The notes under the pieces are model-generated. The model was not told the DNA's origin. It made no database searches and saw nothing but the letters and a program-made list of their open reading frames with translations. 64,000 nt of DNA from NCBI GenBank assembly GCA_000708835.1, contig DF237039.1, positions 124,001-188,000 of the forward strand, given 5' to 3'. Shown one piece after another: positions 5,280-46,900 of the stretch (position 1 is the first letter of the stretch; each line of letters opens with the position of its first letter). Position numbers and translations under genes: made by a program. Origin of the DNA: Klebsormidium nitens (taxonomy: Eukaryota > Plantae > Klebsormidiophyceae).

Positions 5280-8200
5280 ATGGGAGATACAGTTCTCGAG
5301 CTGGGGCCGAGCAGCGGAGGGAACCAGATTCAGGTGGGTGCTATCGCAGATTTGTGAGACATATGCCTCTGAATATAGACAGCAACGCACCCGGTGAATT
5401 AATCAATTAAGAGCCTGATTGACACAATCTCCAGGAAACAGAAAGTATACAGATATAGAACAAAATAATACCAACATTCCAATATGGTCAGAGGTACTCA
5501 GGTTATGGTGATTAGGAAGCTGCAGTGAGGGCACCGGCTCATGTCAGGAACTTGCAGAGATATTCCTCGTGTGATTTCACCTGGATTACCATCTTTTGGA
5601 AGAAGATGCCCTCCTGTAATGGATTGAGATCTACTTTTCTGCTCTCAAAGTGCAGCAATTGGGGAAAGACGCCATCCACTTCTATGCAAGCTCTTAAAAG
5701 ACACTAAGAGATTTGAGGAACCTTATAGTAGACGCTGCCCCCCAGCACTTAAAGCTGATTTGTTTCTGCCCTTCTGACAAGCGGTCACATACTGTTTCCT
5801 AAAGGTTCACATTTATGCTGTGAGAAGAATCTCAAAGATGCTGGACGCGTACTATCTGATTGCATGTTTTCGAAATGCTGGACTGTTCCTGTACGCTCTC
5901 AGGAGGCAAAGACTGTGCGATCTTTGGGCATCAAGACTCCTGAACCTGGAAGTATAAAGCGGGCGCTCACCAGAGGACGCAGCGCGAAGAAATTGGCATC
6001 AAGGAAGCAGGCAAGTGGATTGATGAGTGTTGGCATCAGGCTCCATAGCCACTTGTTCAGGCTTCCAAAAGTGGAAGGTGCACGGGATGATAGAGAATCT
6101 GACCAAGCTTCAAGAAAGCTTCAATGGTTGAGCGTCAGTACGTGCCCCGTCCATCTTCAGAGTGGATCGTTTATCCATCTCTTCCTGGACGAGGGCCAGT
6201 ATCCAATAGGATTCACCTTCTCAGTAGATCTTACATGTTAATATACTGATCTGACATGTCATAACCACCCTAGATGGAACCAGCTCAGAACTCGGTTGTG
6301 ACTACTGTCCATTACTCAAACTGACTCTGCCGCGCTTTGTCACAGCCCCTTCCTGGTGATGGCTTCTGGAAGTATGCGCCTGGGTCAGAAGAAGCAGAGG
6401 CCAACCTGCCGTTCAAGGTATGCAATGACACTCAATGGTTCAATGCTTTTCAACGCTGAATGGAATCGCATTCTGATGGATTACCAGCAGACTTAACTCT
6501 CATACCTTACTGAAATTCTCACATAAAGTATCATCTTTTGCAGCCCCTCCCAGGCGACGGCTTCTTCAAGTACCTCGATACATTTGACAGTACGGAGCAC
6601 AATCCGACCTTCCAGGTGTGTGTACTTCGGTGGGAAGTTGAAGTCTGTGCACACATGCAAAAACCTTGCCTCGGCAAGCTATACTAGTCAGCTGAAGGAA
6701 AGACCTCCGTAGCCAAGGACATGCCAGTGCTTCCACCATCTTTGCAATTACTTTTCAGGTGCAAGTCCTATCATCCGCCTTCTGCCTCAGCGTCTGACTG
6801 TTCGATGTTGAACGCAGGTCCCGCAACGGCATCTTCCTAAGAGCCGGGACTCAAGTCCTCCGCTGGGCTGCTTTGGCCAGCAGCGGAAAGCTCGTAAGAG
6901 CGTGACCTTGAAGCCTAAGCAGGTGGGTATCTTTAGACGGTGGCTCTCAGCATTGTATGTGAGGGCGCTTACTCTGAAGCACAGCAGGCCATTGTTTATT
7001 CTTTCATGACTGTCGACTTTGAGGTTCCTGTCTCTGACATCTGACATCCTCGCTTTGGCGGTTATGCGAATACGAAGAGTAAGATTGTTAAGGACTCTTC
7101 ATGGCACGGACCTCCCTTTCTTCCCTTCTGTACATCTTGGCAGAATTTACTCTCCCATTGTATTCAAAGGTCGAAGGGAAGGTTCAGAAGATGGTTGCTT
7201 CTCAGAGGATCATTTCGACGTCAGAAATTGAGTTGTGGAACTCCAACTCAAAAAAATCGAGGAAAGACTTGAACACGCCAGTGACGATTACTGTTATGAC
7301 GCAGGCGACCAAGAGGTCTAAGACCCAGGGTAGAAAGGCTGAACCTTGGACTACAAAGGACGTCAAACTACCTGACCCGAAACCGCTGCATCCGACTCAC
7401 CACCCTGCATTGAGGACTTACAGCAGGAAGCCTGCAGACTTGGCTCCAAAGAAACGGGTAAGCGACACGAAGCAGCTTTTGATGCAAGATCTCAATGAAA
7501 GGAAGTGGTTGCATGCAGGTATCATCAAATGGATTGAGTCGGACTCCCAATCGCCTTTGCAAGAGCTACTTGATTCGGTACTTCGATACTGCTGCTGCAA
7601 AAGACAGTACCTTTAGGCGCCAGATGGCATGGGAAGAGTCGAGTCTGACGTGCTTACAGAGTCAGTAACTAGACTGAAGCATCTTCTTATATCCTACTGT
7701 GTTGCTTCAATGCAGCCGATCCCTGGGGATGGCTACTGGCAGTATTCCGACGAGGCAGCGGTAGCAGTGCCGACCCTGCCGTTCAAGGTATAAGAGGCAT
7801 CTTTGAATCCATCCCAAGCCATTCCAAGATTGCTGCAATCATTTAAGGTTGATGAGTTGGATTGTGGGAACCCCTGGACGTCAGAAACTGCAACTTAAGA
7901 CAACATGACTTCTTTACAGGCTCTCCCTGGCGACGGCTTTTGGCTGTATCCGGCGGGGTCCGAAGAAGCCCGGCACAATCCGGCGTTTCAGGTGCGGCCT
8001 TTCGCCACCAATCCTCTTGACTTCGACAGTTTCTTGTCCTTATTCTGCTTGAGCAGCACGTGTTTGTTCATGCGGTGCAGACTGGTGACGTATCACATCA
8101 TGCAATCCGTTCGTTCATGTCTCGACTTGCGCATGTAGGCCCTTATTGGAGTATGCTCACTATGTGAAGCCGCGATAAGGAAGGCCAGCTAAACTGTCTT

Positions 8201-11200
8201 CTCCTTTTCCACACAGGTTCCACGGCGCGTTCTCGTGAGGCCCACAGAGTCGAGCTCCCCGCTCAAGCGCTTGGCAAAGCGCGCGCCGGGTCTGAAAGAG
8301 ATTGCGCGGAAACAGGTGAGAGGACATTCCTGTTGCTTTTGGAAAAGTACACTGGAGAAGCGGCCGAACTGCGGCTCCTGAGCTATCGCTCACAAACGAA
8401 GCCGGCTTTCGCCCATCGCTTTTCTTGCTCTTCACCAAGAAGACAAATCGTTCAACGTCATTTTGAACCGCCTCTACGTTTTGTGCAGTCTCGTCCAAGC
8501 ACGAAACTTCAAGACACTGCCGCTGTTATCTCAGCAGGGCAGACCAGGGCCACATCATTAGAGGAGAGCGCGGCAGTGCCGATTGAGGTCAGCTCCGACG
8601 CCAAACAGAGCTCAAGACAGCGTACACGTCCGTCAAAGTCGTTCTGAGCGGTATTCTTGCTTTGCTGTGACCTCCAAGCGGAGCTCAATTTTGCCAAAGC
8701 TTTTCCGGGTTGAGAGCGGCATGTGAAAGAGATTGCTGTCACGCGTGAAAAAGTAGAATCGATTGTCATTGCGTTCCTTTCTTTAGATGAGCAGGACGTA
8801 TGGATCACTCTTAGATCGTTCAGCCAATATCATTTTCTTGGAAGCTGAGGGGAGCGTTCCTGTTTTATAGGTTTCTCGACAAAAGTCCCGCGGAAGCAAG
8901 GACTCGAGCTTCGCTTTCAAGGCCTCTCCACGACGCAGGCTGATCCGAAACGTCTCTTCCCAGAAGTCCAGAAAGGTGAGTACCATACTGGGCGCTGAGA
9001 AACGGAACTGCTAGGAGTGAGCTTACGGAGCAGCCAGTTGACACGTCTTGAAGACCAAACCAAGAGCACGGGATTGGGGACGTTAGCCAAGATTGACAGC
9101 CAGCTTGCTACTCTTTCCACCGTGCCGATGCTACGGAAGAACACAATTGCATTGCTGACAAGAGAAAAGGATGAAGAGTCTGTCATTGTTTTGACTTCTT
9201 TTGGGCGGCTGCGCAGAAGAGGGCTTTTACCCGTCTGCTTCACGGTTGTGGTGATATAAACTGGTTCTGAGGAGCGCCCTTTTTAGAAGACTGGATGTGG
9301 AACCCTTGGGGCAGAATTTGGTGCACCGTTTACCGAGCTGACTAATCACTCATCTCCGTGTCTGCAGCCCCTCCCTGGCGACGGCTACTGGCATTATCCA
9401 CTCGGGTCAGAGACCACAGAGGCCAACTTGCCGTTCAAGGTAGGCTCGTGAATGATGAGAAGCACGCTCACACCGAACGTTATCGTCGTCTGCTTCATGA
9501 AATGTTGCTTGATGAGTTGGTTTCGGACGTCGCGGAGATGTACGAGGGCTGACTTGCTCTTGCAATTGGTTTTCCAGGCACTCCCAGGGGACGGGGTGTG
9601 GGTGTACCCGTTTGGGTCAAACGAAGCGCAGCTCAACGCGGCATTTCAGGTACAACACCCCTCCGCTGGTCTGGACCTTCCACGTCAACCTGATGCCTAT
9701 CGAGGCCCATGTTTGAAGCTTCTCTTTTGTTGCTACAGCTTCTTATAGCAGCTGTTCACAACACAAATAGACCGACTTTACACCCTCCGATCGGCTCTAA
9801 TCCCCCTCGTTCAGGCCTTGAAACCCGTGCTCATGCTAGATCAGCTTGAAGTCAACTCTTGTCGGTGCCTGAGTCCTCAACTCGTGCTGAAGACGTGATG
9901 AGCCTCCATGCCAATTGCTGACACCTTTGAATTCCAATTGGAGCAGGTCCCCAGCCGGCTCCTTTCGAAGAGCAGATCCTCGAGTCCTTCGTTCAAGCGC
10001 TTTGCGAACCGCAAGCAGGCCTCCAAGGATACTGAGCCGACGGCGAAGGTGAGGAGACGTTACGAACTGCAGCTAAAGCTCTAATCAGGGACTTTCAACC
10101 TGTGGAAAAAAGGATTCGTTCCGCGCGTTTCATATTGTGCAAGTGAGCACGGTATGCATCACTTTCTCTAGCAGATGACGTTTGTGAAACAGACACGATA
10201 CACAGAATATACCGTTGTTTGAGCTGGTTGTCCTCAGCCCCTCAGGCTTGCCCTGGATCCTTTGACGGCAGAGTAGTCGTGTACTGGCCATCCGCCCTAC
10301 TGCGTTCCGTCAGTGTTTGGGCACCTGATGAACGCAAGACCAGAAACTCGATCCGCTTTTTCGTTTCACAGCAGGAGCCTTCGAGGGAGGCCCTCCAGCA
10401 AACACCGGCAGCGGCCGCTGCGGTGAGCGAAGACGAGCTGATGGAAGAGTCGGCGAGCCCTGTCGAGGTATTTTCAAACACTCATAAAGCCCTAGAAAAG
10501 AATCGGCGTTCAAATCACATAACCGACATTACTCAATCATCAGTCACCTCGGGGAATCCTACGAGCAAACGGAGGGGTGCTTGTAATCATGTATGTGCCC
10601 TCAATGTGCGAACACTTCGCTCCAAAGGAGAGTCGAACGTATTTTCTTCTAGAACCGTTTGATCCAGTGTCTACGCTTGTGAACCATCCGGTTCAGCTGG
10701 AATGCAAGCCGTCATCTTTCTTGTCGCGGTTCCCGTTTGCACGGTCGAAAGCACCAACTTTACGAAGCTATACCTACAGGAAACTGAACGGGGCAGCGTA
10801 CAGGCCATCTTGTCATGGAAGCGCTTTGAGTTGTTTTTCCAGTGCCACTTTGGCAACTTCCCGTCCATGGTATACTGCGTTTTATTAGCCTTCACCCTAT
10901 TTGGCTTACGTTAGGAATGCTCTCATCGTTAAGCTCTGTTTCGATTCTTACTAAAAGATCACATTTGCAGGTCGAAAGCGCGCCTCCGGTCCTCACAGAG
11001 CCTCCCGTTTTGGCCACCAAGAGACCACGGAGCGCTTTGGGAGTCATATCGCCGTCAGAGGGAGGGATGCGGAGCGTGAAGCTGGTCAAACGCGAGGTAA
11101 CTGCCTCGAATGCCGCTCGAGTTCTCTTTTCCCGATCTCCGTCTCTTCTGATCGGTCTTCAATCATTCTGTTTGGCGCCTTCATCTGAGCAGCGGCTGTT

Positions 11201-14200
11201 CGCAATGTCGAGGATGCTGGTGAAAACGAGAGCAGAACCGCAGAAAGAAGCATTCTCTCCGGGGATCCGAGAGAAAAATTTGCGGATTGAGTGCTCGTGT
11301 TGCTTTCGTTGCTTTGTTTCAAAAGTTGTGGATTCCTGCAACAACCTCTGTTCTGCAACAAGGCCAGGTGATAAACATGGTTGTCCGTGACTATCCGAGG
11401 ACTTTCTTCTCTGCGATACCAGCCTGTGGTGGAATTGGGTCTCGCGTGCTCCGATGTTTTCCATCGCCGTTTGCTGACTAGCCTCAAAATCGGGTTTCGA
11501 AGCGGCGCAACCAGCCGTTGGTTCTGTCGTCATCTCTCATCGCCACTGCGCCCTCTTAATACCCAGATTTCGGAGGTGGGCAGCAAGTGGCTGCGCATCA
11601 TGACCGACATGGACAATCTGCACGCGAAGCTGAAGGCCGGGGGCGCAACGGACCCCTCACAGGCCGGGCGGGTTGTCCGCCCGATGAAGAGGACGGTCGC
11701 AGCATCTACAGCTTCGGCGGATCAACAGGATATGAAGGTGAGAGCTTTCTGCCGTTCTGCCTGGCCTTTCTAAATTGCCTGCCAGATTTTGCTAATCTGC
11801 TCTCATCTTTATTTTGGCCGTCTTGTCTGGTATACTGCTGCCTTGCACGAAAGCTTATCTTCTTCAGGGGTCTAGGGCAGAGTCTCAGTAAACACAGCCG
11901 GGTGACAACCACTCTTCTCGTGATTCGTAAATGCGACTCTATCAACCAAGTCCGGCTAGAACAGCGAACGGCCCTCGAGCTCCCAAGCGTGCTGTATGAT
12001 ATCGGCGCTTCTGCATGTTTGTCATTTGCCGCCGTTATCTTTTCTCGTTGATGTCCTTGATGCTGGAAGGCTTAGCCTGTGCTCTTGAAGCCAAACAAGG
12101 CCCCGCTTCACTTGTCCCCTCGACAATTCAGAGTCCCCTCAAGAATTCAGCATCCTGCCCGTTCTGTCTTTGCAACCATCCCCGCCCGCCCATCGCTTCT
12201 CACTGCATCTATCCAATGCAATGTTCGTGCAGGAGATCGAGGCTCAGTCAACTTCAGACACGCAAGATTTCTTGCTACCTAGAGGCGAGGCCCCGGCGCC
12301 TTCCACCACGCCGACATTGGCACGAGGGAAGATGCCCAGTGCCAGCCCCACGTCAGTTCTCCAGGCTGTCTCGTCGCCGTACGGGACAGAAGGGGCACTT
12401 GGCAGCAGCGATGAGGTGCGACTGTATTCTCGAGAAAGCTTGCTGGGCGTTTTGCATAGCACCTCGATTCAATAAAGATGAAAAGCTAAAGAGTCTGGAC
12501 TTATTATTACTCTATTAATGGGGGCCTTGTGTCTGCTTCTGAACCGCTCGTGAAGGTCGCCCAGGCGAAGGTGTGTCAGACGCATAGCTTTTGGCAGATA
12601 TAATGCTTTACCAATGCGGCACGGTGGTCAATCTGTCCCTTACGTCCCCGCTACTAGCACCGCCACTGAGGTCTGCTGACAGGTCTCCACTTTGCGAACC
12701 TTGAGACTGCTTTAACGGCCTGAAAATCCTCGCCCGAACAAAGTCAGCGCTCGTTAGATCGTCAGTTTGCAGACGAAACTGCTATTTCGGAAGCCGTAGG
12801 TGTGAAGAAACGGTAAATCCGCCAGAAAGCATTGGAGCTAGATCGTCAAAGTGTTCAAAAGTTCTCACTTTCCACCTCCGGGCTCACTTATTACGAGCAT
12901 TCCTTGCAGGAGCCAAGTATTCTCACGAGGAGTGCGAAGACTGCGCTGGTGCTCCCCGCCCGCCCTGTGGATTCGGCGACCAAGACATGGGAGTTCCCCT
13001 CTATCCGGGAGCAGTCACCCTTGACGGTTTATCGCACTACAAAGCTGAGCGGAGCCGATGTGGAAGGGGCAGACGGCAAGACTTTCGAGGCAAGACTGCA
13101 AAGCTTTTCCGCGTTTGTTTTTGAGTGGTGCTCTGCTTCAAAAAGACCGCGCTTCAGTGCAATTATCCGTGCTTTGAGCTCTCTCTGCCACAAAGTGTCC
13201 GTTGGAAGGCGAGCTTGGTAAGTAAAGGCCGAAGCAAGCAACTGAGGCGGTAAGAGGGACGGAGGGGTGTCAGGGACGCCACGCACTCATGCAGACTATG
13301 TCAGAAGGCATTTGTTCATCCAGCCGACCGCAATGAGAAGGTGGTCCCAGCACCCTGCATGTCAAAGGTGTCCTCAGTTCTGCTTGTCAAAACTTCAGTG
13401 TTTATAATCCTCGAACTCGTTGGAGCGGGTGCCACAATTCTGTGGAGAAGTACTTCAAGCAGATAGATTGAGTTAGAGCCGAGCACGTTGGAGTTCCACT
13501 TTCAAAAAGCTCTCTCCGACAACACAGAAGGTGCGAGTGTGCTCTGAACCCTCTCCTCTGCTACACAGAAATATACTTCCAAGGCTGCTTCCGAGATCGA
13601 GGAGGAAGTGCCCTCTTTCATGGGCTTCGCAACTCTCTCCAAGAACGGAAACGAAGGGACAACGGTTTTGGAGGGGCCAAAAAGCACCGGAACGCTTTCC
13701 CCACCTCTGGAAAAGCAGTCGATGAAGGCTGTCGCCTCCACCGACCGCGTTATCGGCGATGCCACGGTTCCGGCCGCGGATCCAACGGAAGCGACCGGAA
13801 TTACTCCGGAAGCCGCCCCAGCTGCGCTGCCTGCGCGCGCGTCGTCCCGGCAGAAGGCGACCAAGACGAAGGAAGACGGGCGGGCGAAAAAAACCTCCCA
13901 GAAGGCGCTTTTCAAGGATACCTTTGCCTGGACCAAAAGCCCAGCTGACAAGACGTCGTCGACTGGTGCGAAGGAGAAGGGCCCCGCTGCCGTCAAGCAG
14001 ACTCGGGCCGGAACGGTGAAAGAGAGCCCTGCGATTGGAGACGGGAAACTCGGCCGCCCTAAGCGCCCGGCCTTGGCGCCCTTGACGGTGAGGCTTCGCA
14101 CTTAAGGCGATATTATTTTTACCTATGCTTTTGTTGATTTTTGGGGAGAAAGCGATTGGCTCCGGTTCTCGCTGACTCCCAAGATTTTGGGAAGTTCGTT

Positions 14201-17200
14201 GGTGCAAATCACGGCGGCTGATCGATGGCTCATTTTCATACCCGAACAAAGGTAGGCACTTTCGAGAACCCGAGCTTTTCTGGACAGAAACTTGTGAAAA
14301 TGACGGTTATCGACGCACTGGGGAGCATCTGCAGCCGGTTGCATTGTAGGGCGGATATGGAAGTCTCTCCGTAGTCAAAGCGACTTGGAGATTGCTGGCA
14401 GTCAGCCTGGGTGCTTTGCGCTTCACTTCGTGATACTCTAGAGCACTCGGTTTACTGCTCTTCTCCATCAGAATTGCTTGCTTCTCTTATTAAGGTAGCC
14501 ACAAGTCAGTATCTCCTCCAATCAAGGCGGTCTCTTTCCTAAGCCCTCCCGCGTTTGTGCAGATTCCGGAGCCTCCCACGGACGTTGACGATCGTCCGGT
14601 TCGTCCGCTGAAGGCGTCCGCCCCGGTCACGTCTCCAGACAGGCCGAAGACGGCCGAGGTGCGTGGTGTTGATTGCATTGGATTTTCGAGTGCTGTCGAT
14701 GTGGTATACGGCATTAAAAGTCGGTCGGCCCTTCCGAACTCTGTCCTCGGACGAAATCCTCGATCCAAGAAAACATTCTATTAGCAAGTCTGTAACTTCC
14801 GAGGTCAGGCTTGCTTCTGGTCAGGCTTCCTTCGATGGGTGGGCCACTTGAACTAGAGCAGAATCGCTGAGTAATGAATCAGATTAAGCAGATCTACTCC
14901 TCCGCAAACAGGACTCCCAAAAGAGGGTCAAAACGTGAGCGACTTCTATACGGGTTGCCCTTGGAACGGTTGAATGTAGCCCCTTGGATCGAGATGGAAT
15001 CTGTTGAAACTGCTTCAGGCTTCAAATGTTACCCTAAGCTCTCTGTCTTCTCCAACTGTGCACCATCTTTATATTGCTTTTTTACTCGTGGAGGTTGTCC
15101 GTTGTTTGGTCAGCTTCAGCCGAAAGTGCCGCTCCGTAATTCGTGATTCGCCGGAATCTAGCGAGCCGTTTGCTTGAGGTTCTATCTGTAAGCGACTGTC
15201 TACTTTCTGACAAATGTTCATCGTCTGCAGGAGATGATTGCCAACTACATGTCCCTCGAGCACAACAGCACCCTGAAGCGCGTCAAGGCCAAAGCCCGGG
15301 CGGCCCTCGCATCCAAGGACGAGGAGATCCGCTCGCTGCGCGCGCGCCTTCTCGAAATGGAAAGCACGTCAACCAAATCGGAGCTCGTTCTCACTGGTGC
15401 GGACGGCTCAGAGTTCCTCGGCGAAATCGAAAAGCTGGGGGATGACTTGACAAAGAGCCGTGCCGCCGAAGTAAAGGCGGGCGACTCGGAAGACGCGCTA
15501 GTGGCGGCGGAGGGGCGCATCGCGGAGCTCGAGGAGCGCCTGATCACCGCACAGGAAGACACGCACATCATCGCCACCCGGCTGGGCGCCAAGATGCGAC
15601 AGCAAGACGAGGACCTCCAGAGCGCGGAATCCGAGCGGAACGAGCTCGAGCGGCAGATCGCGGAGCTGAAAACTCAGGTCGGCCGCGCCCAGAAAGACGG
15701 CGACGACGTGGCGGCCCGCGGCGCGCGGCTCGTGGAGGAGAACGCGAAGCTGCGCGACGCGGCCGCGGCGCTGGAGCGCCAGCTGGACGAGGTCGCGCGT
15801 GGGCGTGCGCGCGCGCGCGCCGAGCGCGACGAAATCGCAGCCGAGCTGGAGGCGTTGGGCGCGATCGCGGACGTGCTGCAGCGGCAGCTCGCGAGCACGG
15901 GCGCACGCGCGCGCGACTTTGAGGCGGAGCTGATGGCGACCCAGGACGAGAGCGGCCGGATGCGCGCAGAGGTGCTTGCGCTGCGGGCGAAGCTGGAAGG
16001 GAAGAGCGGAGAGCTGGCAGCGGTGCGGGCGGAAGTGGCGAAGGAGAGGGAGGCCGCGGCAGATCTCCAGGCCAAGGTCGAGGTAAGGCGCCAGTGTTGC
16101 GTGCGGATGATCGATTCTTGCTTTTGTCGAGGAGGTGGAAATATGCGTTTGTGGTGCCAGTCCTTGCTCTTTTGTACTTATCCGTCTCACCGGTTTTCTT
16201 TTCGCTGGTTAACGAAAAGTGGCCATGACTGGGTAAGGGTGACGTTGTCTGAGAGTTTGCTGAAATGCAGCAGTGTTTCCTTTCTTGAGACGCTCTCTGA
16301 AATCCGTTCTAAAACGACAAGCTCGCATGACCTGTTTAGAACATTGATCGAACGAGACCATCATGAAACTCCGTACCACGTGCCATCGGAAATCGGATCC
16401 TAGACTTTTTGCGCTGAGATCTGTTTTCGAATTTTACACGGCGCAGCGACCTTATGTGGATCTTTTCCTTTTTGAGGAACGCCAGGATTTCAGTCAGCGC
16501 TCAACTGTGCGCACCTTCACCAGAAAATGGCCTTTCGTGATCATCTCTCGAAGGACGAGGGCGTGTCAAGCAGTGTTTTGGACGAGCGGGCTTGTCTCTG
16601 GCTTTGTGTAGCGCACTTTTGCGTTGGTCACTTTCTTTCGCAGGACGAGAAAAATAGCCAAGCTCTATTGGGTACCCAGAGCCGTATGTAGTTGCGTATG
16701 AGGCTTTTCTTGGACCTCACTCTGGTCGTTTCGTTGCACTTCTCCAGGAAGCTGAGGCCGCACTCAAGGAGGAGCTCCGTCGTCGCGACCAGTTCGAGAC
16801 CGCGGAAGCGGAGCGGCTCAAGCAAACGCTCGCGCACTCAGTGACGGCGCTCGCGCAGACGCAACAGGAGGTGACGGTGCTCAAGAAGATCACCGAAGAG
16901 GTCAGCGGCGCGACCAAGGAGAAGGAGACCGAGGCGGAGCAGCTGGCGGGCGAACTAGGCGCGGCGCGCGCTGAGCTGGCGCGACTGCAGCAGGAGCTGG
17001 ACGCAGCGCGGGGGCTGACGTCAGAGCTCACGGAGGCGCGCGCGAAGCTCCTGAGAGCGGAAGGGGACCTCGCGGCGGAGCGGAAGGAGGCGGCCGCGCT
17101 GGCGACCGAACGGGAGAAGGAGATTAAACGGCTGTCGGTCGAGCTAGTGCAGAGCCTGGAGGCGCTTCAGCGGCTCGCGGAAGAGCGCCGCGCGCTGCGC

Positions 17201-19720
17201 GCCGCCAGTGAAGCGGCCGCGGCAAAGGGCCTAGACACCGAGCGCCTCGCGGCAGAACTGGAGGGGGCGCAGCGGGCGCTCGAGAAAGCGGAGGCTGACG
17301 TCAGCGTGCAGGAGCGCGCGGCCGCGCAGTCAGCGGAGGAGCTCGCGGAGCTGCGCGCCGCGATGGAGGCGCTGGCGGTCAAGGTGGCGACGCTGGAGGA
17401 AGAGAGAACTAGGATGGGCGCACTTATCGAGGAGAAGGAAGCCGCGGCGCTGCGATTGCTGGACGAGGTGGCGGGGTCCGGGGCGGCACTCCTGAAGACG
17501 CAGCAAGAGCTGAACGCGGCGCGCGTGGTGAACCGGGATCTTTCCGCCGCAGTGCCGGAGAAGGACCGGGACATCGCCAAGCTGAGGGCCGAACTGGCGG
17601 CGATGAGCGCGGCCCTGCTGACGTCACAGCGGGCGCTGGAATCCGCGGAGAAGCGGAGCGGCGAGGCGGCCCGGGAGAAAGAGCGCGAGCTCGCGCGCCT
17701 TGAGGAGGAGCTCGCGCACTCGCAGGCAGCGCTGGTGGGGGCGCAGAGCGAAGTGAAGGGTCTGCGCGCGAGCGAGAAAGCGGTCGGGGAGGCCGCCCGG
17801 GGAAAGAGACAGGTGGCGGGACAGCTGGCGGCGGACTTGGCGGAGGCGCAGGCGGCCCTTGGAGAAGCCGGCCGCGAGTTGGGCGTTTTACGGGGAGCAA
17901 ACCAGAAGCTGGTGGAAACCGGGAAAGAGAAGGAGGGGACGGTCGCACAGCTGAAAACTGAGATCGAGGAGCTACGGGCAGCATTGGCGAAGTCAAGCCA
18001 GGATTTGAAAGCGCTCGAGGAGGCGCACTCGAGGGCCGGGGAGACGATCCTGGCGAAGAGTGCGGAGGCGGCGCGCGCCTCGGACGAGCTCGCGCGCGTT
18101 TCGGCGGAGCTCGCGCGCGTGCGTGCGGTCCTGGCCGCAGCCGAGCAGGAGGCCGCGGCGTTGCGCGAGGTGCGCGACGGGATGCGCGAGGCGGAGCGCG
18201 GGGCCGAGCAGAAGCTCGCGCGAGAGGCGGACGAGTTTGCGGCGACTCTGGCGGCGAAACTGCGCGAGGTGGAGACGCTGGAGTTGGAGAAACGCGCGCT
18301 GCGCAAGGAAGCGGCCGCGCGCGAGAACCGGGTGCACGAACTAGAGGCGGCGGTGGAGGCGGCCGCCGATGAGAAGGCGGCTCACACGGAATCCTCCGAG
18401 CTGGCTGACTTCTACGATGCGCGTTCGGGCGAGGTGAGATTAGCTGTCGGTTGAGTGCGGCCGACTGAGAGACGTGTCCACAAAATGGGGCAAAAGAGAC
18501 CAAGGAAGCGCTGAAAGGTTAACAGGCTTCGCAGAGGAAGCAAGCGAGACGAGATCACAGCAGACATGTCAGATCGAGGCCATCCGCTCATCAATGACGT
18601 AAGGCGCCTTGAATTTTGGGTGGGCCTCCAACCATCCTTTGTCGGACTCCGTGAGAGAGAAATTGCCTCGGTAGAAGGAGACTCACATTATGTGTCTCCC
18701 TAAGAGTTTACAAACTTCCCTGCAGTCTCCAAAGGCTTGAATTCACCGGTAATAATAGTGGCTTTCCGTCGTTCAAGGTGTTCGCCTTCCCGTTGTGCTT
18801 ATTGTTGTAAGCGTCTTATTCTCAGCCGGCCTCGAATCTCGCTCACCAAGTAAACGTTGAACGTACAAAGACACAAGTGCGTACGAGCGAGGCCGCCCTT
18901 GAGACGGTCCCAAGTACAACCATTCGGAACTCAGATCACGACATCGATCCTGTGGACATTCACCTTGTCGAGAATTTGCGGCAACTCAGCCCTTATCTTC
19001 TGCCTTTTTGACGTTGCAGGCAACGCACGAGAACGAGAAGCGTAATCTAAGCACAGTTCTTTCCCTGAAACTCCTTTGTGACTGAATATATCTTTTCTAC
19101 TTTTTACCTTTTTGCAGGCAACGCCCGAGTGCAAGCAGGGGTGATGGTTTATGGTTGTCCTCCTGAACCGGTACTTACCTTTCACTAATACTTCTGCAGG
19201 CCACGCCCGAGAGCAAGAACCGCGGCGCGAGTCCGGTTGTCCTCCCCAGTAGCTTCCCCTCGGGGCAAGCCACCATTCTGGTGGACAGCGACGAGGAGCC
19301 GGTGCTAGAGACGGACTTGCCTGCGGCAGAAACCGCAGTGGGGAGCCCTCAGGCGTGGTCCAAGGTTCGCAGATTCCCGGCAATCTTTCGTACTGGAAAT
19401 GAATTGGTCTCTTTGTTCGCTGGGCAGCACTTGGGAGTGTGCCCTCTCTTGCGGACAGCTCGAGGAGAGTACTTTCGCGTTGCTTTCAACTTGATATTGG
19501 ACATGGGTCTGGCGCTTGTGAGAGCAGATTTTTGGTTCTTCTTGCAATCCCTGTTCTGGTTGTGTGGAGATGTTCGGTGCGCACTAGAGTCTCCGAAAGG
19601 AAGCTGCCGGGTCCCGTATAGCAAGCGCTGACGGAACTTGTGACGTTTCTGCGACCTTTTGTGAGAGCTTGGTATCTGGTATATTTGTAGGAGCGCCCTC
19701 AGGCGTTTGAGGCGCTCTGA
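5280..19720 (+). CDS. Giant multi-exon protein of unknown function (~1,800 aa): N-terminal PLPGDG repeats, S/P/K-rich low-complexity middle, long C-terminal coiled coil
   Basis: Modelled in-frame exons with canonical splice sites: 5280-5333 (start uncertain), 5903-6010, 6346-6417, 6544-6615, 6818-6922, 7170-7457, 7716-7787, 7920-7991, 8217-8315, 8489-8587, 8871-8975, 9368-9439, 9578-9649, 9947-10048, 10372-10467, 10971-11096, 11567-11737, 12233-12415, 12910-13089, 13569-14087, 14563-14658, 15231-16082, 16748-18433, 19200-19364, 19691-19720 (TGA). It could be split into two genes; the frame is continuous in this model. Confidence 0.7.
6346..9649 (+). repeat. Six paralogous 72-nt exons each encoding a 24-aa repeat (consensus PLPGDGxWxYxxGSxEAxxNxxF[KQ])
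   Basis: 6346-6417 PLPGDGFWKYAPGSEEAEANLPFK; 6544-6615 PLPGDGFFKYLDTFDSTEHNPTFQ; 7716-7787 PIPGDGYWQYSDEAAVAVPTLPFK; 7920-7991 ALPGDGFWLYPAGSEEARHNPAFQ; 9368-9439 PLPGDGYWHYPLGSETTEANLPFK; 9578-9649 ALPGDGVWVYPFGSNEAQLNAAFQ. Each is flanked by CAG and GT. Confidence 0.92.
16841..18150 (+). repeat. ~42-aa (6-heptad) periodic repeat within coiled-coil exon
   Basis: Successive units start TALAQTQQEV, AAMEALAVKV, AALLKTQQEL, AALLTSQRAL, AALVGAQSEV, AALGEAGREL, AALAKSSQDL. Spacings among the last six are 42, 42, 39, 42, 42 aa, and an EK[ED]-like motif recurs about 26 aa into most units. Confidence 0.75.
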
Positions 19721-21206: not shown

Positions 21207-24200
21207 CTATGCAACGCCCTCCTGGGCCTCCGGCAGTGCCGCCGCCTCTTCTTCCGGCTCCTCGTAAGGGACGTACGGAGTGATCGTCGCAAGCGGCATC
21301 GTTTTGAAGTCGACTTCCTCGTTCTCGAGCGCGATAAAATCCTCCATGTCTGAGTACTCGTCGCTGTCCCACTCCGACTCCGAGTCGAGCATCTGCTCCT
21401 CGAGCGCGTACGCGACGAACTTGTTCCCACTCGGGCCGCGCGCCGCCGCTTTGCGCTTCTTGACCGCGAGCATCTTCCGCCGCCGTTTGGAGCGCCGGTC
21501 GTTCCTGTCAAGGGTTTCAAGCTGGATTCAGATGGGGGGAGGAAGCTGCAGGAGACGCTTTGCTGACCATTGCACTTTGCCAGGGGCCAGTACAACAACA
21601 GCGTGAAGAGAATGCTGCTTTACCGCAAAATCCACTTTCTTACACCTTCGAGCGCTAGCTGAAAAGAGAGGGACCGGGAAACAAGGGATCCGCTCCTGTT
21701 GCAGGCTCAACCATCTAGAATTGCTGCTTCAGTTCAACAAGGGTGTGGCATCGGCGACTCCCATCTCCAAACGATCAGAAATGACAGCGACGACGAAAAC
21801 TCGGCTTCAAAAGGGAGCACCTATAGACGTAAGTCTGTCCTGCCCAAAACGGGCCTTGATTGGATCAACAAAGTCCAGAAACGACCTAGTCAGATCGCCT
21901 CCGAAGGACCTGGATGAGAAGAAAGGGGCTTCTATGTGCTCGAACCAAACGATCACCACCATTACCAACAATACTACAGGTCAACCAGAACAGCTCTGGT
22001 TTTCCTTCGTGTGCAATGTCCACCTGAAGAACGACCGTCTTTGATGTTTCTCAAGATCTCGCAGACCTTATACCCTGCGGTGTCGAGTGCTGGTCAGAAA
22101 GGGTCCTCATACTGAATCGAACAAGTGCTTTGCCGAAAACATAACCCAGGCAACTCTGCTTTCGGACTGTTGGCTTAAAACACTGGAAAACTAGAAGAAG
22201 CAGAATCGAAGCAGAGATACTGACAGCTGTTCCTCACCGTCGCTCCTCCTCTTCCAGATCAATCTCCGCCATCTCGCCGCCCTGCTCCACCAGCGTTACC
22301 TCCACGCCCGGGGCCACTTTCGGACGCTTTTCGGACGCGCTCTCCCGTTTTCGGACGCTCTCGGACGCCTTCCTCTTGGCGCCCCTCTCCTCCTTGCCCT
22401 TCTCCTGGTCGACAACCGCCCACCACGCCGACGGTGCCGCGCTCTTCCGTCCGGAACGCGTCCGCGGAACGGATTCCGTAGGGGCTTCGGCACCGTTCGA
22501 ATCCGAGTCCACACCTTTTGCGTCCGAACCCCGTTCCTCAACCTCCGAACCCACTTCGTCTGAGTCCGGTTCCTTTCTCGCTGCGTCCAAACCCTTTTTC
22601 TCCGCGTCCGAACAGAGACGTGCATCCAAAGCCCCATCTCCGGACAATGTTCGCTCGTCTTCGTCAACACCTTCGAGCCCACCGGCGCACGTCAAGTCGG
22701 CCGCTTCTTCCCGACCGCTTTCGTAGGCGTCCGTAGTCGGAAAGACTGTCCGAACGTCCGTCGTTAGCACGCGGCAGTTATCGGAAACCCTAAACCCTGC
22801 TTGCCGCAAGTCCTCGCACAACGGGGCTAAGCAGTCAAGCAGACCGGTAGGTGCACAGGTTTCTCGGCAGGCCTCGTAGGCGGCCATCAAACCTTCCAAC
22901 TGATGTCGGAACCGCACTAAAGTTGCTTGTAGCACCTTGTCTTGTGCCACCTGGGCGCAACAGAACGAAAGCTTCAAGGAGCTTCGCCTTTTCCGGCAAA
23001 GGGAATCGTGGGTAGGGAAAGAGACTTCGTTTGAGACTAGAAGTTCGCAAGCGTGGTCCCCCTTCACGATTGAATTTTGCCACCACTGCGCTTCCGAGCC
23101 CGTAGAAAAGAAACTCGGAACAACCTCCCACACTCCAGCCTCTTGGTAAAGGTGGCCCAGCTTTAAAGAGAAAGAACGAATTTGCATCCTTCCGCGTTGT
23201 GGTGCCCTTGACCAGCCTCTCAGTTAAGGTATCCTGCATAAGCACAAACATACTCTTCAGCAGCCCTCTCCTTCTTGCCATTCGCCCATACTATCCCGAA
23301 CGGAGGTTCAGGCCCAACTTTGAGGCCTCCTTGCGCACACACACCGGACCGCAGTGTCCCCTCCTCTCGACCAGCCTCTCGGTCGAAACATTCGGAAAAA
23401 GCATCAACATTGATGGCACACTTTTGGCAGCTCTTTCTACTCGTCCGTTTCGATCGGCTTTTCGCAGTATGTCCAGATCCTAGTGAAAGACGCGGTTGCA
23501 CGCTCACCGCACTCCACTGTCCCCGTTTCCTTTCCACCAGCCTCTCTGCAGCGCAGTGCATCGCGGCCCCCAACCGCACGAGCTCCGCCGCCGCCTCGAC
23601 TTGCGAAGCGTCCGGCTTTTCCGCCCCCGTGCCGTCTCCGTGCGCCGTCTTCGCTGCCACCATAGCCGCTGGCTCTTCTCCCGCAACCTCCGCGTCAGGG
23701 TTGCTCCGTTCGCTCCCGTCGATCGAAGTACTTCCTGCCGTTCCTGTTCTGTTGGAGGGACTTTCTCCCAGACCCCCTTCTGAGACGCACATAAGCATCT
23801 CAACTTCAGCGGGCTTCTGTGCAAGGGGGGGATTCTTCTCACTCCCGTCTGACCCCCCCGAAGCAGGCTTCTCCCTGCTGCGCAGTTCCGACGACCACAA
23901 GCCGGTCCCTTTCGAACCATCCACTTCTTCTGCCCTGCCGACCTCCGAAAGCGCATTCTCACACAGATCCGAGAGCCACAGAACGCCTTCCTCGACGGGA
24001 CTCAATGCCGCGCACAACCCACGCAGAACCCGCAGACCCTGCCGCTCATCTAGGAGGCCCCCGGCCCCCGTTTCTCGCAGCTCGACTGCCACGTCAGCAT
24101 CGCAGACCGCCGTAAACGCGCCAATGATCTGCGTGAGCGGCTCCAGGCCCAGCTCCACGTATCCCCCTTCGTCCTCTGCCAAGTGTCCTTTCCCCATGTG

Positions 24201-26952
24201 CCCACTGCCATCTCTGTTAGAACCGGCCCCCCTTTCTACGGTCCGAACTAGGAACTCGAGCGCCAAGTCTAAAATCTGATCCCTACATCCGTTCGACGCC
24301 AAATGCACAACCGGGGGGGCAGAATCACTCCCATCCATCACCCCCCCCGCCTCTTCTTCCAGTTCCGGCACCTCGGTTTTCAGCCCGCCATTCTCGACCC
24401 AGCTCAGCATCGCCTCCTCACAGTCAGGGCTCTTCTGAGGGGGTAACTCCTCTGGCTTCGTGCCCCCCCCAACCGGAACCGCCGTTACCCCCTCAAGCCC
24501 CCCTTCCCCTGCACCCATGGGCAATCCCGCTGATTCCGTTTCACAGTAACCCCGCTCTTCTCTTTCCAAAGACTCCAGCCCGCTAATGTTACGATCCTCT
24601 ACGAGTCGGGTCGCCGTTTCCAGGCAGTCGCTGACTGCGCTCGCGGCCCATGACACCGCGACCTCCAGAGGACTGTACTCGAGGCCGAGCGTTACGAGGG
24701 ACTGCAGCGGGGCACCTGCCGGGACGTCGAAGCTCGCAACCAATCCACGTGCGACACCTGTCGCCAGGCGGACGGCCCCATCCGAAGGGTGACTCGTGGA
24801 GTACAGACGAACCAGGGACGTGAGGAGCCCACAGAAAGCTGCCAGGAGCAGCGTCTGCAAAAGATGCACCTCTAGTTAGTGCGAAGGTCTGTTGATGGAC
24901 GTTGAGACCCGTGCTGAGAAGTCTGGGGTTCAAGAGGCGAACTGACATGGCGCAGGTGATGTGCCGGATACCTTCGATAAGTCAGGAGTAATGAAAAGCA
25001 ATCTAGTCCTGTCCTTCGAAACAGGTAAGCCAATTATTCAAATTAGAGTCAAGCGCCCGCAAAGTATCCACCTTCTCAAGGAGCTGGTGCACTTGCGAGG
25101 ACTGAGATCCCTCAACCGAACGACGTTTGCCACATGAAGAATCACGCAGATTCAGTCAAATTGCGATCAAGCCAAAAGTGATTCAAAGACAAAAGGGAAC
25201 ACTCAGGAAAGGAAAAATCACAATTGAAAGAAGACACCGACCTACCTCCAGTCCGGCTTCCATCTCCAACCGCAGGATCACAGTTATGTAAACCAGCAGC
25301 TGACCCAGCGGGTTAGGGACCCCCTCGAGCCCCAGATCCTCAACTGCAGCGTCCACTCCAACCAGTTCCCGAGCGACTAGAAACGCCGCAGCGCTCTCAT
25401 CTGGGGTAAGACAGCCGGCCACCAAACCGTCCACTTCTGCCGCACTCTGAGCGCCCTGCTTGTCTGGAGCCAGACTGTCTGACAGATTCTCAGATTCGTC
25501 TTCTGTCACGCCATCGGGGCCCCTTCTCTCGGTTGACTCGACTTGGGTTCTGGAACTTTCGGAGTGGCTTGCGAGCCACTGACACACATCAGAGAGGGCG
25601 GTCAGCGCCGCCAGCTGCAGGCTCGACCTCCAAAAAGTGACACCCTTCACCCCTTCCTCCCCGGCTGGGGCCTTACCCATTTTCACCCCCTCTAACTCCT
25701 CCAAACTTGCCTCAGGCGTTCCAATATTTACCGGTCCGGCCACAACAGCTGCAAGGTCCGCTGAAGTTACGCTCAGAGCCCTAGCTAGCGCCAAGGCTGC
25801 AGGCATTGAGTGCAAGAGCTCCCCTTCCTCCGCCGACTTTGCTTCGCCGTCAGTAGTCGGTGTGTGAAACCCGGCCAATTCGAGCGCAGACAAACAACTG
25901 CCCTTGAACAGCCCCACCGCTCTCTGCGCAAGCCCACCCACATCCTGCAACGCCGCCCCCTGTACTTCAGCCGCCTCTGCACTTCTTGATGGGACCTCTA
26001 AGTATCCTCTTGCCAGACTCAAGGCGTGAATCATAGCCAATTGCGCACCGGCATTGAGCTGAACAGGGCGAACAAACGACGGTGCACCACAGCTTGGCTC
26101 TACGTAGTCCAAGACACCAAGAAGCGTAGTCAGCCCGAAACCGATGTCGGAACTGGCGCCCGAGTGGGATGCACCTTCCCCCCCTCTTTCGGCCTTCGCT
26201 TTCTTCCCCGACCCAGAATCAGCTCGTCGCAGAAATGAAACGAGCACACAATGAACACACACAAGCTCGAGCAACTGCTCACAACTCAGCACAGGCCCCC
26301 TGGACTTTCCCAGGGTGTCTAGCACGTCCCCTGTCCGAATCTGCCCACCGTCCAAAACAAGTCTGCTGACCATCCGAACTCCCCCCCCCTCCAAATTGCC
26401 CAATTCCGAAGGCCCCGTCGGTGGCTCCCGCCAGTCTGGCGAAACCGCCTCTACCAGAAGCCTCTCCACAAGTCGCAGCGCAAGAGCAGCGCCCCCCTGA
26501 CAGCTGGCAGTCCGCATCCGCAAGCTGTCAACATTTTCTTCGTCCCTGGCTTCATTAGCCCCCTTTGGAGACTGGCCACTTCCGTTGCTCCGTTCGCTTG
26601 AGCCGGCACCCAAGTCTTCCTCCCTCTCCCCTGACTTTACCATAGAGGCACTGTCGAAGAGTTCCGCTCCCGGGTGCCCCTCCCTGCTTGCTTCTTCCGG
26701 AGAACCAGCTGAGCAGCCATTCTGCAACAGACCACTTCCTTTCCCAACGCCTTCTCCCGTGGCCGTCTGTTCGCCTCCGGGCTCCTCGGAACAACCCACT
26801 AGCTCGCAGAGGTTCTTTGCGTCCAGAAGAAGGGTGACGGACGCTAGAGTGGCAGAGCGGAGCACCGAGGAGTGAGCGGTGGGGGCTTCAGAAGGGGCGT
26901 CCATACTGAGTTCAGAAGGGCTACTAGGAAAATTTTGAACGTGGCTGACCAA
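21207..26952 (-). CDS. Large acidic protein of unknown function, multi-exon (helical segments separated by G/E/S-rich linkers)
   Basis: Long codon-biased ORFs 25183..26952 (donor at 25245), 23220..24869 and 22234..23187 (exon 22950..22238 with AG/GT). Probable small exons at 25101..25072 and starting at 21909. The terminal exon reads LETLDRNDRRSKRRRKMLAVKKRK...GNKFVAYALEE...DEYSDMEDFI...stop at 21207. The 5' end is unresolved (possibly ~27450). Confidence 0.65.
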
Positions 26953-43995: not shown

Positions 43996-46900
43996 ATGGC
44001 GACCTCTTTGCGGCGGAGCATATCCAGTATGCCGAGCCAAAGGGGCTCCTTTGCAAACCCATTGCCAGCTGACAGCAGCTTTGCAAGCATGTCTGGATTT
44101 CTTGAGCTTGAAGCGACTCAGCAGCTAGCGCCACCAGCGGACCGTTTTAGCGTTGTTGGCACCTCTAGCTTTGTTGGGGGCACAGGTGAAGAGTGCGCAG
44201 ACCTTCGAGGGCGGGGATTGGTGGCCCTGCCTGCGCTTGGGAGACAGTCAGGGTTGACCGCAGTGGACCTTTCAAACAATAGCATAGCAGGCCTGGAGTC
44301 AGCTCCGGAAGAGTTGCCGGACGATCTGCAGGTGAGCTGACAAAATTCTATCTTCGTTTGGCATTGAAGGCATTGCGGATGGTAGCTGGAGGTGCTTGAC
44401 TTTGGCAGATTGGGTTTAATGGTTTTACCGGCTGTTGTTGATAGACAATGTTGACCAGCCAGCATGATGCAGACGGTGATTCGCAAGCTGTTTTGAGTAC
44501 TCAGATCTGCTGTCCTTTTTCGAGGACAATATGGCCTGCAATCAAAGTCAAGCGAGTCAGTCAGGTCAGATCAGTCAGGAGATCTTAAGAGCATCATCTT
44601 CTCTTCAGGCCTCCCCTCGCATCTTCCTTCTTATTGGCCACAACTTGAAGCTATTCAACTCAAAGCACCCCCAGTCGATCTGCAAATTTGGCTGAAACTC
44701 TTTCCTGCCATGAGCAATGCTTCTGGAATGGTACGTCAGTCTTCAGTTGCTCCAGTCGCCGCCGGCATTGTGCAAGTCACCGCAGCATTCCACCTAGCAG
44801 GCTGCTTAAGAACAGCTCACTTGCGTAAAGCCAGCTTACACGGTCAGCAACCAGATCTCCCCTCATGATCAGCAATCAGCTCTCAACCCCTCCTCTTTCT
44901 CACCTCAGACCAGTCTCGTTTCAAACTCTCAGTGTCTCCCTCTACTACTTCCAGATGCTCTCCCTGGCTGGTAACAAGCTCTCGGACCTCTGCCACCTAA
45001 AGTACCTGACTGCGTGCACCTCCCTCATCGACCTCGACATCTCAGGCAACCCTGTAACCGATGGTGCCGCCAGGATTGGCTTCGACCTTCGACCGTTCCT
45101 GCTCTTCCTTCTGCCACGGTTGCAGAGGTGAGGGTGATTATCCTGGCTTTTACCCTTTCTGGACTTGACCCGTTGCTTATGGAAGGCCGGGACTTTGTGA
45201 ACCACTGCCCTATGAATTCAGTGGCATAGGCAGATTGAACAATCCTCAGCTCTTGTCTGTCACAGTAAGGGACTATCCTATAATTCGCGGTCTGGCAGAG
45301 ACTTGCACGTTGGATAAAGCCCACATACTACGTGGGGAAGCGAATTTCTGACCTGAGCGACAACCTATTGGAAGCATTGACTGCAGTGAACAGCTGAGAC
45401 TTATTTCCTCGTATCCACTTGATTGGCGGGAAGAGCAAGGGCGCTCGAAGACGACTCGCTTGGTTCATAGCGAACTTTCTGGGGCACTTTACATTCTTAT
45501 CCACTTCGCTCTTTTTGTTCTCCGTTTTTCCGTCTCTTCGACCCCGTGATATCGAAGCGACGGTCCTTCGTTCATAACGTATCTTCCCATTCCGTCTGAA
45601 GGGATCTCCCGCAAACACCGGCTTGCAAACAACCTGCTGCTTTCACGTGGATCCGGAAACCTCACTTTTTCGACGGCGCTGAGTGCCGAAACTCGGAAGT
45701 GAATGACGACTGGGCTCGGACCTACGTATAGCTAGCTGCATCAAGGCCTTGAAACTGACTCTTCACCACAAGCGCAAGAACACGATGCATTGCTTTCAAA
45801 AAATGCTTCCACACAATGTTGCTTGAGTACCAACAATTGTCTTATGAGGGCGACGGGCTGTTTCGACCCAACTTTCGGAGAAGCTAGAGTGTCGAAGGTT
45901 GTTTTCTCAATCAAATCTGTACTCAGACTTGATTCCTATTTCCTTGATTCCAGCCCAATCCCGGACATGGAGAAGGTGGAAAGAAGCTGTATCCAGATCC
46001 TTTCCAGCCGTTCGAAGAATTGTTGAGGAATCGTCGTACAAATACGGAATACTTTAAGAATCGAACCAAGGGATATACAGAAACAGCTGCTATGGAAACC
46101 CTCAAATCCCGAAACCGTGAATATGTTCTGACGCTTCTCCCAGGCTGAACGGGCAGGACGTCCGGCAGGCGCGGCTGCTGGAGGCGTCGCGCACGCTATT
46201 CACGGACGCCCGAGGGCGGCTGTCGGACCGGCTACTGGAGATGCTGGACGACGGACGGCAGGTCGAGCTGACGCACTACCTGTCGCAGCAGGTCAGCCTG
46301 ACGTCAGCTGAAAGACAGCGGTCCTATCCTCCATGAAACGGGCGTCTAGCTTCGCTTAGAGGGACAATTGACTGTCGCGAAACCGCACATGTAAGACTTT
46401 TAAAGCCAACGGTAGAGACCCCGAAATGTGGAACGTTTCTCTGACGAAACGTTTGCAATTCCCCTACACGTGTTTGGCCTGTTGGGACGTTGTGAAGATC
46501 GACAGTCCCTTCGACTGTCCCTTGCGCCTCTGCGGCAGTCCTTTCACCTGTGTACGTTGTGGACATCGGTACCAGAATGCAGCAAAACTTGCCAAATCTG
46601 CAAAACACTACAATCACAGGACCTAAAGCCTTTCAGGGAATGTTGTTGGGTTGTATCAAAGCCCTGAGAATTTGTCCACGGAATGCTTGCTGGGAGTGGC
46701 AACAACCGCCAGTTCTGGTCTGTGCTTCTCCAACAAGCTAGTAGCTGCAATCCCCTCCGCTCTCTTCCTCCTCTACCAAGCCTCTTGGCCTCTCTTTTTT
46801 TCCTCTCCTCTCTTCAGACGTTTACTTCCACAATCTGCTTCGTTTTCCCTTGGTATCATCTTAGACTACTTGTTCTGAGCTTCTCATCTTTGAGCTTTCT

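Follow-up and report, generated by a model that had tools for sequence, protein, structure and literature searches.

Does a run of very short exons in the genome of the alga Klebsormidium nitens encode a protein repeat that has so far gone undescribed and, if so, what kind of protein carries it? The question is raised by a stretch of 64,000 nucleotides (nt) of contig DF237039.1 (positions 124,001 to 188,000, forward strand), which is referred to here as the window and supplies all positions given below. Between 6346 and 9649 on its plus strand, six exons encode one copy each of a 24-residue repeat with the consensus [PA][LI]PGDGx[WF]xY…F[KQ].

Six repeat exons and their cassettes

The original prediction had described six exons of exactly 72 nt, spanning 6346-9649, in which PGDG, an aromatic W/F, a Y and a terminal F[KQ] are kept. 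A six-frame scan of the window with the pattern PGDG.[WF].Y(12)F returned six full motifs, all of them on the plus strand and within this range, and both the exact coordinates and the alignment of the six copies bear out that description. The copies, for which the motif scan, the alignment, the splice boundaries and a profile score agree, are the following:

6346..6417, + strand: unit 1 repeat A1, 72 nt, ending in ...NLPFK, 58.9 bits
6544..6615, + strand: unit 1 repeat A2, 72 nt, ending in ...NPTFQ, the most divergent copy (F and not W at position 8), 54.2 bits
7716..7787, + strand: unit 2 repeat A1, 72 nt, ending in ...TLPFK, 52.4 bits
7920..7991, + strand: unit 2 repeat A2, 72 nt, ending in ...NPAFQ, 57.3 bits
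9368..9439, + strand: unit 3 repeat A1, 72 nt, ending in ...NLPFK, 58.9 bits
9578..9649, + strand: unit 3 repeat A2, 72 nt, ending in ...NAAFQ, 52.4 bits

Every one of these exons is preceded by cAG and followed by GT, and is in phase 0 at both ends. Six residues (P3, G4, D5, G6, Y10 and F23) are invariant in the alignment, position 8 is W in five of the six copies and F in the remaining one, and within a pair the first copy always closes with K and the second with Q. When the window was simulated 200 times with a first-order Markov model, the full motif never appeared. Against a profile made from all six, the individual copies reach 52-59 bits, while the next-best stretch in all six frames of the window reaches 7.5 bits; therefore, the window holds exactly six copies and no degenerate ones besides. 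The repeat exons had also been said to be invisible in the list of open reading frames (ORFs), but two of the six lie inside listed ORFs of at least 70 residues (7905..8138 and 9452..9748).

The coding status of these exons can be judged from the way in which the copies differ. Their DNA similarity amounts to 60-79%, and it starts and stops at the splice sites, with the 60 bases of flanking intron showing 0.74-0.77 differences per site between copies, which is the random level. Inside the exons, differences at codon positions 1, 2 and 3 are 0.35, 0.29 and 0.48, the third position being the most variable. The ratio of nonsynonymous to synonymous divergence (dN/dS, calculated according to Nei and Gojobori) lies between 0.18 and 0.53, with dS running from 0.6 to saturation, and the invariant residues have been kept through synonymous codon changes such as GGT/GGC/GGG, GAT/GAC and TAT/TAC. 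All twelve splice sites of the six exons are intact, and none of the exons contains a stop. The end of similarity at the splice sites, together with the variability of third positions and the dN/dS values, is thus the mark of old, selected coding exons. According to these comparisons, the six 72-nt exons belong to a K. nitens gene and do code for protein; they are old duplicates under purifying selection and not recent echo copies.

The repeat exons are arranged in the order A1-A2-B, which is present three times in the gene model described below, so that the A1-A2-B unit of the original prediction proves to be real. A1 exons end in [NT]LPFK and A2 exons in N[PA]xFQ. Exon B encodes about 34 residues and is strongly basic (net charge +7 to +8) and Ser/Pro-rich, with a VP.R.L start and an SSP cluster. 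Since the A1 copies are closer to one another (dN 0.17-0.31) than to most A2 copies, the unit of duplication would be the cassette rather than the single exon, and the sequence comparison indicates that the six repeat exons arose by triplication of the three-exon cassette A1-A2-B. The introns between A1 and A2 (126, 132 and 138 nt) are the three shortest in the gene model. The B exons and the other exons found around the cassettes are listed here:

5903..6010, + strand: 36 codons, basic (net charge +9), upstream of unit 1, with an R-x-L ... S motif like that of exon B and a GC donor (gcaagt)
6818..6922, + strand: unit 1 exon B, 35 codons, net charge +8, VP.R.L start, SSP cluster
7170..7457, + strand: linker exon preceding unit 2, rich in Ser, Thr and Pro, 96 codons with net charge +13; no Pfam match passed the threshold
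8217..8315, + strand: unit 2 exon B, 33 codons, net charge +8, with S-P-L-K, a full [ST]-P-x-[KR] site
8489..8587, + strand: linker exon, 33 codons, near neutral charge
8871..8975, + strand: 35 codons, basic (net charge +11), upstream of unit 3, with an R-x-L ... SS motif like that of exon B
9947..10048, + strand: unit 3 exon B, 34 codons, net charge +7

The A exons have a net charge of -2 to -3 and contain 4-5 aromatic residues in 24. In the composition table, the exons that flank them carry net charges of +7 to +13, and the neighbouring exons in the first third of the model contain at most three aromatic residues each.

Relatives of the repeat and the deposited annotation

All searches for relatives were made exon by exon, and covered protein collections and one metagenome scan. 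When the six exons were run singly against Pfam-A with hmmscan, their scores not being summed over the repeats, none of them matched any family at an expectation value (E) of up to 10. A profile search of the PDB gave no chain at E < 0.4; two matches at E ~0.5 to a 13-residue stretch of TADA1 were judged to be due to chance. A search of protein collections with a profile of the six repeats, which had been suggested in the original prediction, was run on 1.84 billion representative proteins and gave four matches, none of which was accepted as a relative. Three of them (P0001, P0002 and P0004) were rejected by their sequence, as they look like translated CRISPR-type repeat arrays, in which a fixed unit of ~10 residues, found in three frames, alternates with variable spacers; such arrays are potential false matches for short-repeat profiles. 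The fourth, also rejected, is a tandem repeat of 16 residues, SLPGDGYWVETT, that comes from a set of soil reads. In the ESM Atlas, the best score obtained with one repeat was 0.88 to unnamed clusters, below a meaningful level, and a literature search found no description of the repeat. The claim that the repeat matches no named family is therefore borne out in Pfam, the PDB, the 1.84 billion proteins, the ESM Atlas and the literature, and on these searches the repeat has no detectable relative in any of the collections.

The metagenome scan yielded 11 loci, all of them GC-rich and each with one PLPGDGFWDY in a long ORF. Ten of the 11 share one sequence context, from which L007 departs, and one locus (L002), when checked against PDB 1L0Q, matched the YVTN beta-propeller of this Methanosarcina surface-layer protein. 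These matches bear on the possibility that the repeat belongs, in very divergent form, to an already known short-repeat family, such as the sperm-tail PG-rich (PGPGxY), cell-wall/choline-binding or MORN repeats, or the YVTN blade. There is a loose likeness in the pattern of P-G-x-G plus aromatic residues, the PLPGDGFWDY core is present once each in 10 bacterial YVTN-type propeller-like ORFs, and a hairpin is weakly predicted for the repeat. However, it was the search pattern itself that picked out the bacterial matches, each a single copy with no similarity outside the 10-17 matched residues, and the period here is 24 residues, in pairs placed between basic exons, compared to ~40 for the blades of a propeller, which has 6-8 of them with similarity along the whole blade. 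The likeness to YVTN proteins was accordingly judged to be a chance match and not homology, although by analogy it suggests that the PLPGDGFWDY core can sit in a strand-turn-strand context.

The remaining families fare no better. Sperm-tail PG-rich repeats (Shippo-rpt, which we take to be Pfam PF07004) resemble the A exons in their P-G-x-G core, followed by an aromatic residue and later by a P-x-F-like end. They differ in their period and in the core, which here is PGDGxWxY; moreover, no relative was found among solved axoneme proteins, and no Pfam model was matched by the six exons taken singly (E up to 10). In the same way, the ~20-residue Gly/aromatic hairpin of the cell-wall/choline-binding repeats (CW_binding_1) is not recognised in the A exons, either by a Pfam family or by a PDB chain at E < 0.4. 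Taken together, we consider membership of a known family very unlikely. As it stands, the repeat reads from its sequence as a lineage-restricted orphan repeat.

The same collection also provides information about the annotation of the locus. Over residues 92-539, the ORF at 46683-48464 shows 100% identity to the K. nitens protein KFL_000900260, encoded on a 214-kb scaffold, and the proteome of this alga is therefore present in the collection. In the search of 1.84 billion proteins, 35.8 bits correspond to E = 5.7e-4, whereas a single copy from the window scores more than 50 bits, so even one retained copy would have been listed. As no K. nitens protein matched the repeat profile, the A exons are missing from the deposited K. 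nitens proteins. In addition, a word search with the 562-residue coiled-coil exon introduced below gave no match at E <= 1e-10 among proteins of 309-983 residues. Consequently, there is either no annotation of the gene or an annotated product that exceeds this range in length and lacks the A exons. The translations of nine ORFs of the window had no exact match in the collection.

Gene model and coiled coil

The gene model in which these exons are placed was built by eye from open, phase-0 exons bounded by AG and GT (or GC). This putative model starts with an ATG at 5280 and strings together 23 open exons, all in phase 0, as far as 18433. Apart from the exons already listed, it comprises the following:

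5280..5333, + strand: putative first coding exon, ATG, 18 codons, donor gtgggt, modelled by eye
10372-10467, 10971-11096, 11567-11737, 12233-12415, 12910-13089, 13569-14087 and 14563-14658, + strand: seven tentative linker exons, chosen by eye, which join the repeats in frame to the coiled coil
15231..16082, + strand: coiled-coil exon, 284 codons, heptad periodicity z = 10.7, A+E+L+R 55%, only sub-threshold coiled-coil Pfam matches
16748..18433, + strand: coiled-coil exon, 562 codons, heptad periodicity z = 17.6, A+E+L+R 64%

The original prediction had included a long coiled-coil stalk, and the two last exons of the model do encode a long coiled coil. Heptad periodicity was measured as the power at period 3.5 compared with shuffled sequence, and the values of 10.7 and 17.6 obtained for the 284- and 562-codon exons stand against z about -0.5 in control exons. 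With a Pro+Gly content of about 5%, both exons show the sustained heptad periodicity and the low Pro/Gly that characterize coiled coils. A Pfam scan of ten non-repeat exons gave only sub-threshold coiled-coil matches, and four of the linker exons (11567-11737, 12233-12415, 12910-13089 and 13569-14087) matched no family. The linker region allows alternative boundaries, such as a strong donor near 13218. Two introns of the model need GC donors to keep the frame, at 6011-6016 (gcaagt) and 13090-13095 (gcaaga), both on the plus strand; the former is the classic GC-AG donor consensus. Through this hand-picked, in-frame chain of exons, it is plausible that the repeats and the coiled coil of ~850 residues belong to one polypeptide.

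At 19010-19370 (+ strand), after the last coiled-coil exon, three paralogous copies of an acceptor and exon start are stacked, with starts at 19020, ~19110 and 19200. Copies 1 and 2 run into a stop after 21 and 8 codons, respectively. The third (19200) remains open for ~56 codons up to a possible donor and includes the sequence ILVDSDEE, which resembles a SUMO-interaction motif with a CK2-type site.

A possible docking function and its alternatives

The reading of this locus that we favour is that of a multivalent docking module on a dimeric scaffold, a tentative reading which, taken as a whole, we hold to be quite possible but somewhat short of probable. The cassettes would lie in a disordered, basic N-terminal region of ~900 residues that continues in frame into the coiled coil. 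Holding 4-5 of the few aromatic residues of this region next to the PGDG turn, the A modules may form specific sticky docking elements, the A1-A2 pairs, in surroundings that are otherwise basic and disordered. If the in-frame model is right, the coiled coil would dimerise the protein, which would then display three pairs per chain and six per dimer. These pairs could bind a repeated or polymeric partner or, through cation-pi contacts, the neighbouring basic segments. Finally, the R-x-L and S-P(-x-K) patterns of the flanking basic exons resemble cyclin-docking and cyclin-dependent kinase (CDK) sites, and phosphorylation of these exons could switch the binding.

With regard to the fold of the A module, the original prediction had drawn an analogy with beta-hairpin repeats. 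An AlphaFold2 model of one repeat with three intron-derived residues on each side, for which the other five copies were supplied as alignment, does contain a hairpin, in which FWKY pairs with AEAN around a PGSEE turn, but its mean predicted local distance difference test score (pLDDT) is only 63.5 and the analogy is thus weakly supported. The model weakly suggests that the A module forms a small beta-hairpin beside the PGDG turn. Several known short motifs (NPF, FFAT, LIR/AIM, W-acidic, PPxY, GYF ligand and SxIP) were considered by eye and do not fit.

A number of points weigh against the docking reading. The link between repeats and coiled coil makes use of exons that were picked for being open and in phase 0, and the pattern of phase 0 throughout is partly the product of this selection. 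An ATG at 15234, directly after the modelled acceptor, could begin a separate coiled-coil gene. R-x-L and S-P patterns are common by chance in sequence rich in Arg, Ser and Pro, the hairpin at pLDDT 63.5 was modelled on one isolated repeat with six intron-derived padding residues, and none of the results points to any binding partner. For these reasons, the functional reading is to be taken as a guess, while the status of the repeat as undescribed has survived every test made on its sequence.

A parallel in architecture is found in structural microtubule-associated proteins (MAPs). The repeats of tau, MAP2 and MAP4 are short tandem repeats of 31-32 residues, one per exon, in a basic, phosphorylated, disordered region. 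The protein modelled here shares with them the short repeats, the Pro-Gly-x-Gly turn, the presence of one repeat per exon and the basic disordered surroundings. It differs in its period of 24 residues, in a PGDG core (not PGGG) accompanied by three aromatic residues, in the acidity of the repeats, in their arrangement as A1/A2 pairs between basic exons, and in the long coiled coil that follows. A second parallel is offered by scaffolds of the KNL1/Spc105 type, which carry fast-evolving arrays of short motifs in a disordered N-terminal half and a C-terminal coiled coil. The likeness consists of a lineage-specific, repeated short motif in a long disordered region followed by a coiled coil, although the latter is far longer here (~850 residues), and no MELT-like motif or RWD domain was detected by Pfam in the exons scanned.

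The first of these parallels leads to an alternative in which the protein is itself a MAP: the basic Ser/Pro-rich exons would bind acidic tubulin, the A modules would add specific contacts in the manner of the PGGG repeats of tau, MAP2 and MAP4, and in the course of the cell cycle the protein would come off again once its SP sites are phosphorylated. The alternation of basic disordered segments with short conserved repeats, each on its own exon, the S-P-L-K and SSP clusters of the B exons and a long coiled coil suited to dimerisation are all in line with it. Nevertheless, the resemblance to the general architecture of structural MAPs is only an analogy, the acidity of the A modules is unusual in a tubulin-binding repeat, and there was no match to the tubulin-binding repeat or any other MAP family of Pfam, nor to any PDB chain, axoneme and microtubule complexes included. 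We regard this alternative as improbable. A comparably small probability is given to the proposal that A1 and A2 are mutually exclusive exons, so that an mRNA would include only one of them in each of the three units and, instead of six tandem repeats, there would be up to eight isoforms. Adjacent similar exons of equal length and phase separated by short introns are the classic signature of such pairs, and this is what is found here, the A1-A2 introns (126, 132 and 138 nt) being the shortest; the exon length is also a multiple of three, and the frame therefore fits both readings. Exclusivity is not forced, however, as these introns are long enough for splicing, and the type-specific ends (LPFK versus N[PA]xFQ), kept in all three units, fit the joint use of both exons.

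It might also be argued that the repeat exons are non-functional, being either remnants of local duplication (exon echoes) or parts of a gene in decay. In favour of this are the duplicated acceptors and exon starts stacked at the 3' end of the same gene model, and the absence of the repeat exons from the deposited proteome. On the other side stand a dS near saturation, six residues invariant through synonymous changes with dN/dS of 0.18-0.53, twelve intact splice sites, the lack of stops and fully randomised flanks, a combination that is not expected of neutral echoes and makes this explanation most improbable. Going further than the docking reading, PGDGxWxY…F could be an unrecognised small beta-hairpin binding repeat that perhaps occurs in Klebsormidium or the early streptophyte algae alone and has been overlooked because exons of 72 nt are passed over in gene prediction; with six copies on each chain of a dimeric coiled coil, flanked by basic spacers that phosphorylation could switch, it would form a new multivalent tether for a cytoskeletal or organelle partner. 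In this full form, the proposal appears rather unlikely.

Lineage-restricted orphan repeats are common in disordered regions of eukaryotic proteins, and the features of this repeat indicate that it is a new sequence family of a familiar kind, namely exon-duplicated short repeats in the disordered region of a putative coiled-coil protein. If the exons are expressed, modules that are aromatic and acidic would alternate in this family with spacers that are basic and possibly phosphorylated, all on a coiled-coil scaffold, and the reference annotation of K. nitens, a key species for understanding how land plants arose, would be without a conserved, selected part of a large gene. Were this the case, a re-annotation aware of micro-exons might recover further hidden repeat proteins.

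Two other regions of the window deserve a brief mention. Just downstream of the gene model, a large gene occupies 22234-26952 on the minus strand, with open exons of 317, 549 and 589 codons, a high GC content and a strong negative GC skew. At 51247-51951 (minus strand) there is an intact ORF of 234 codons for a methyltransferase of the FkbM family, which has no exact K. nitens counterpart in the collection, its best matches from this alga being paralogues with 58-63% identity; it is probably an unannotated gene. A protein 92% identical to it is found on a 14.9-kb Logan contig, which may also carry a 75% relative of KFL_000900260, and this region thus appears to have a syntenic Logan contig from a related alga.

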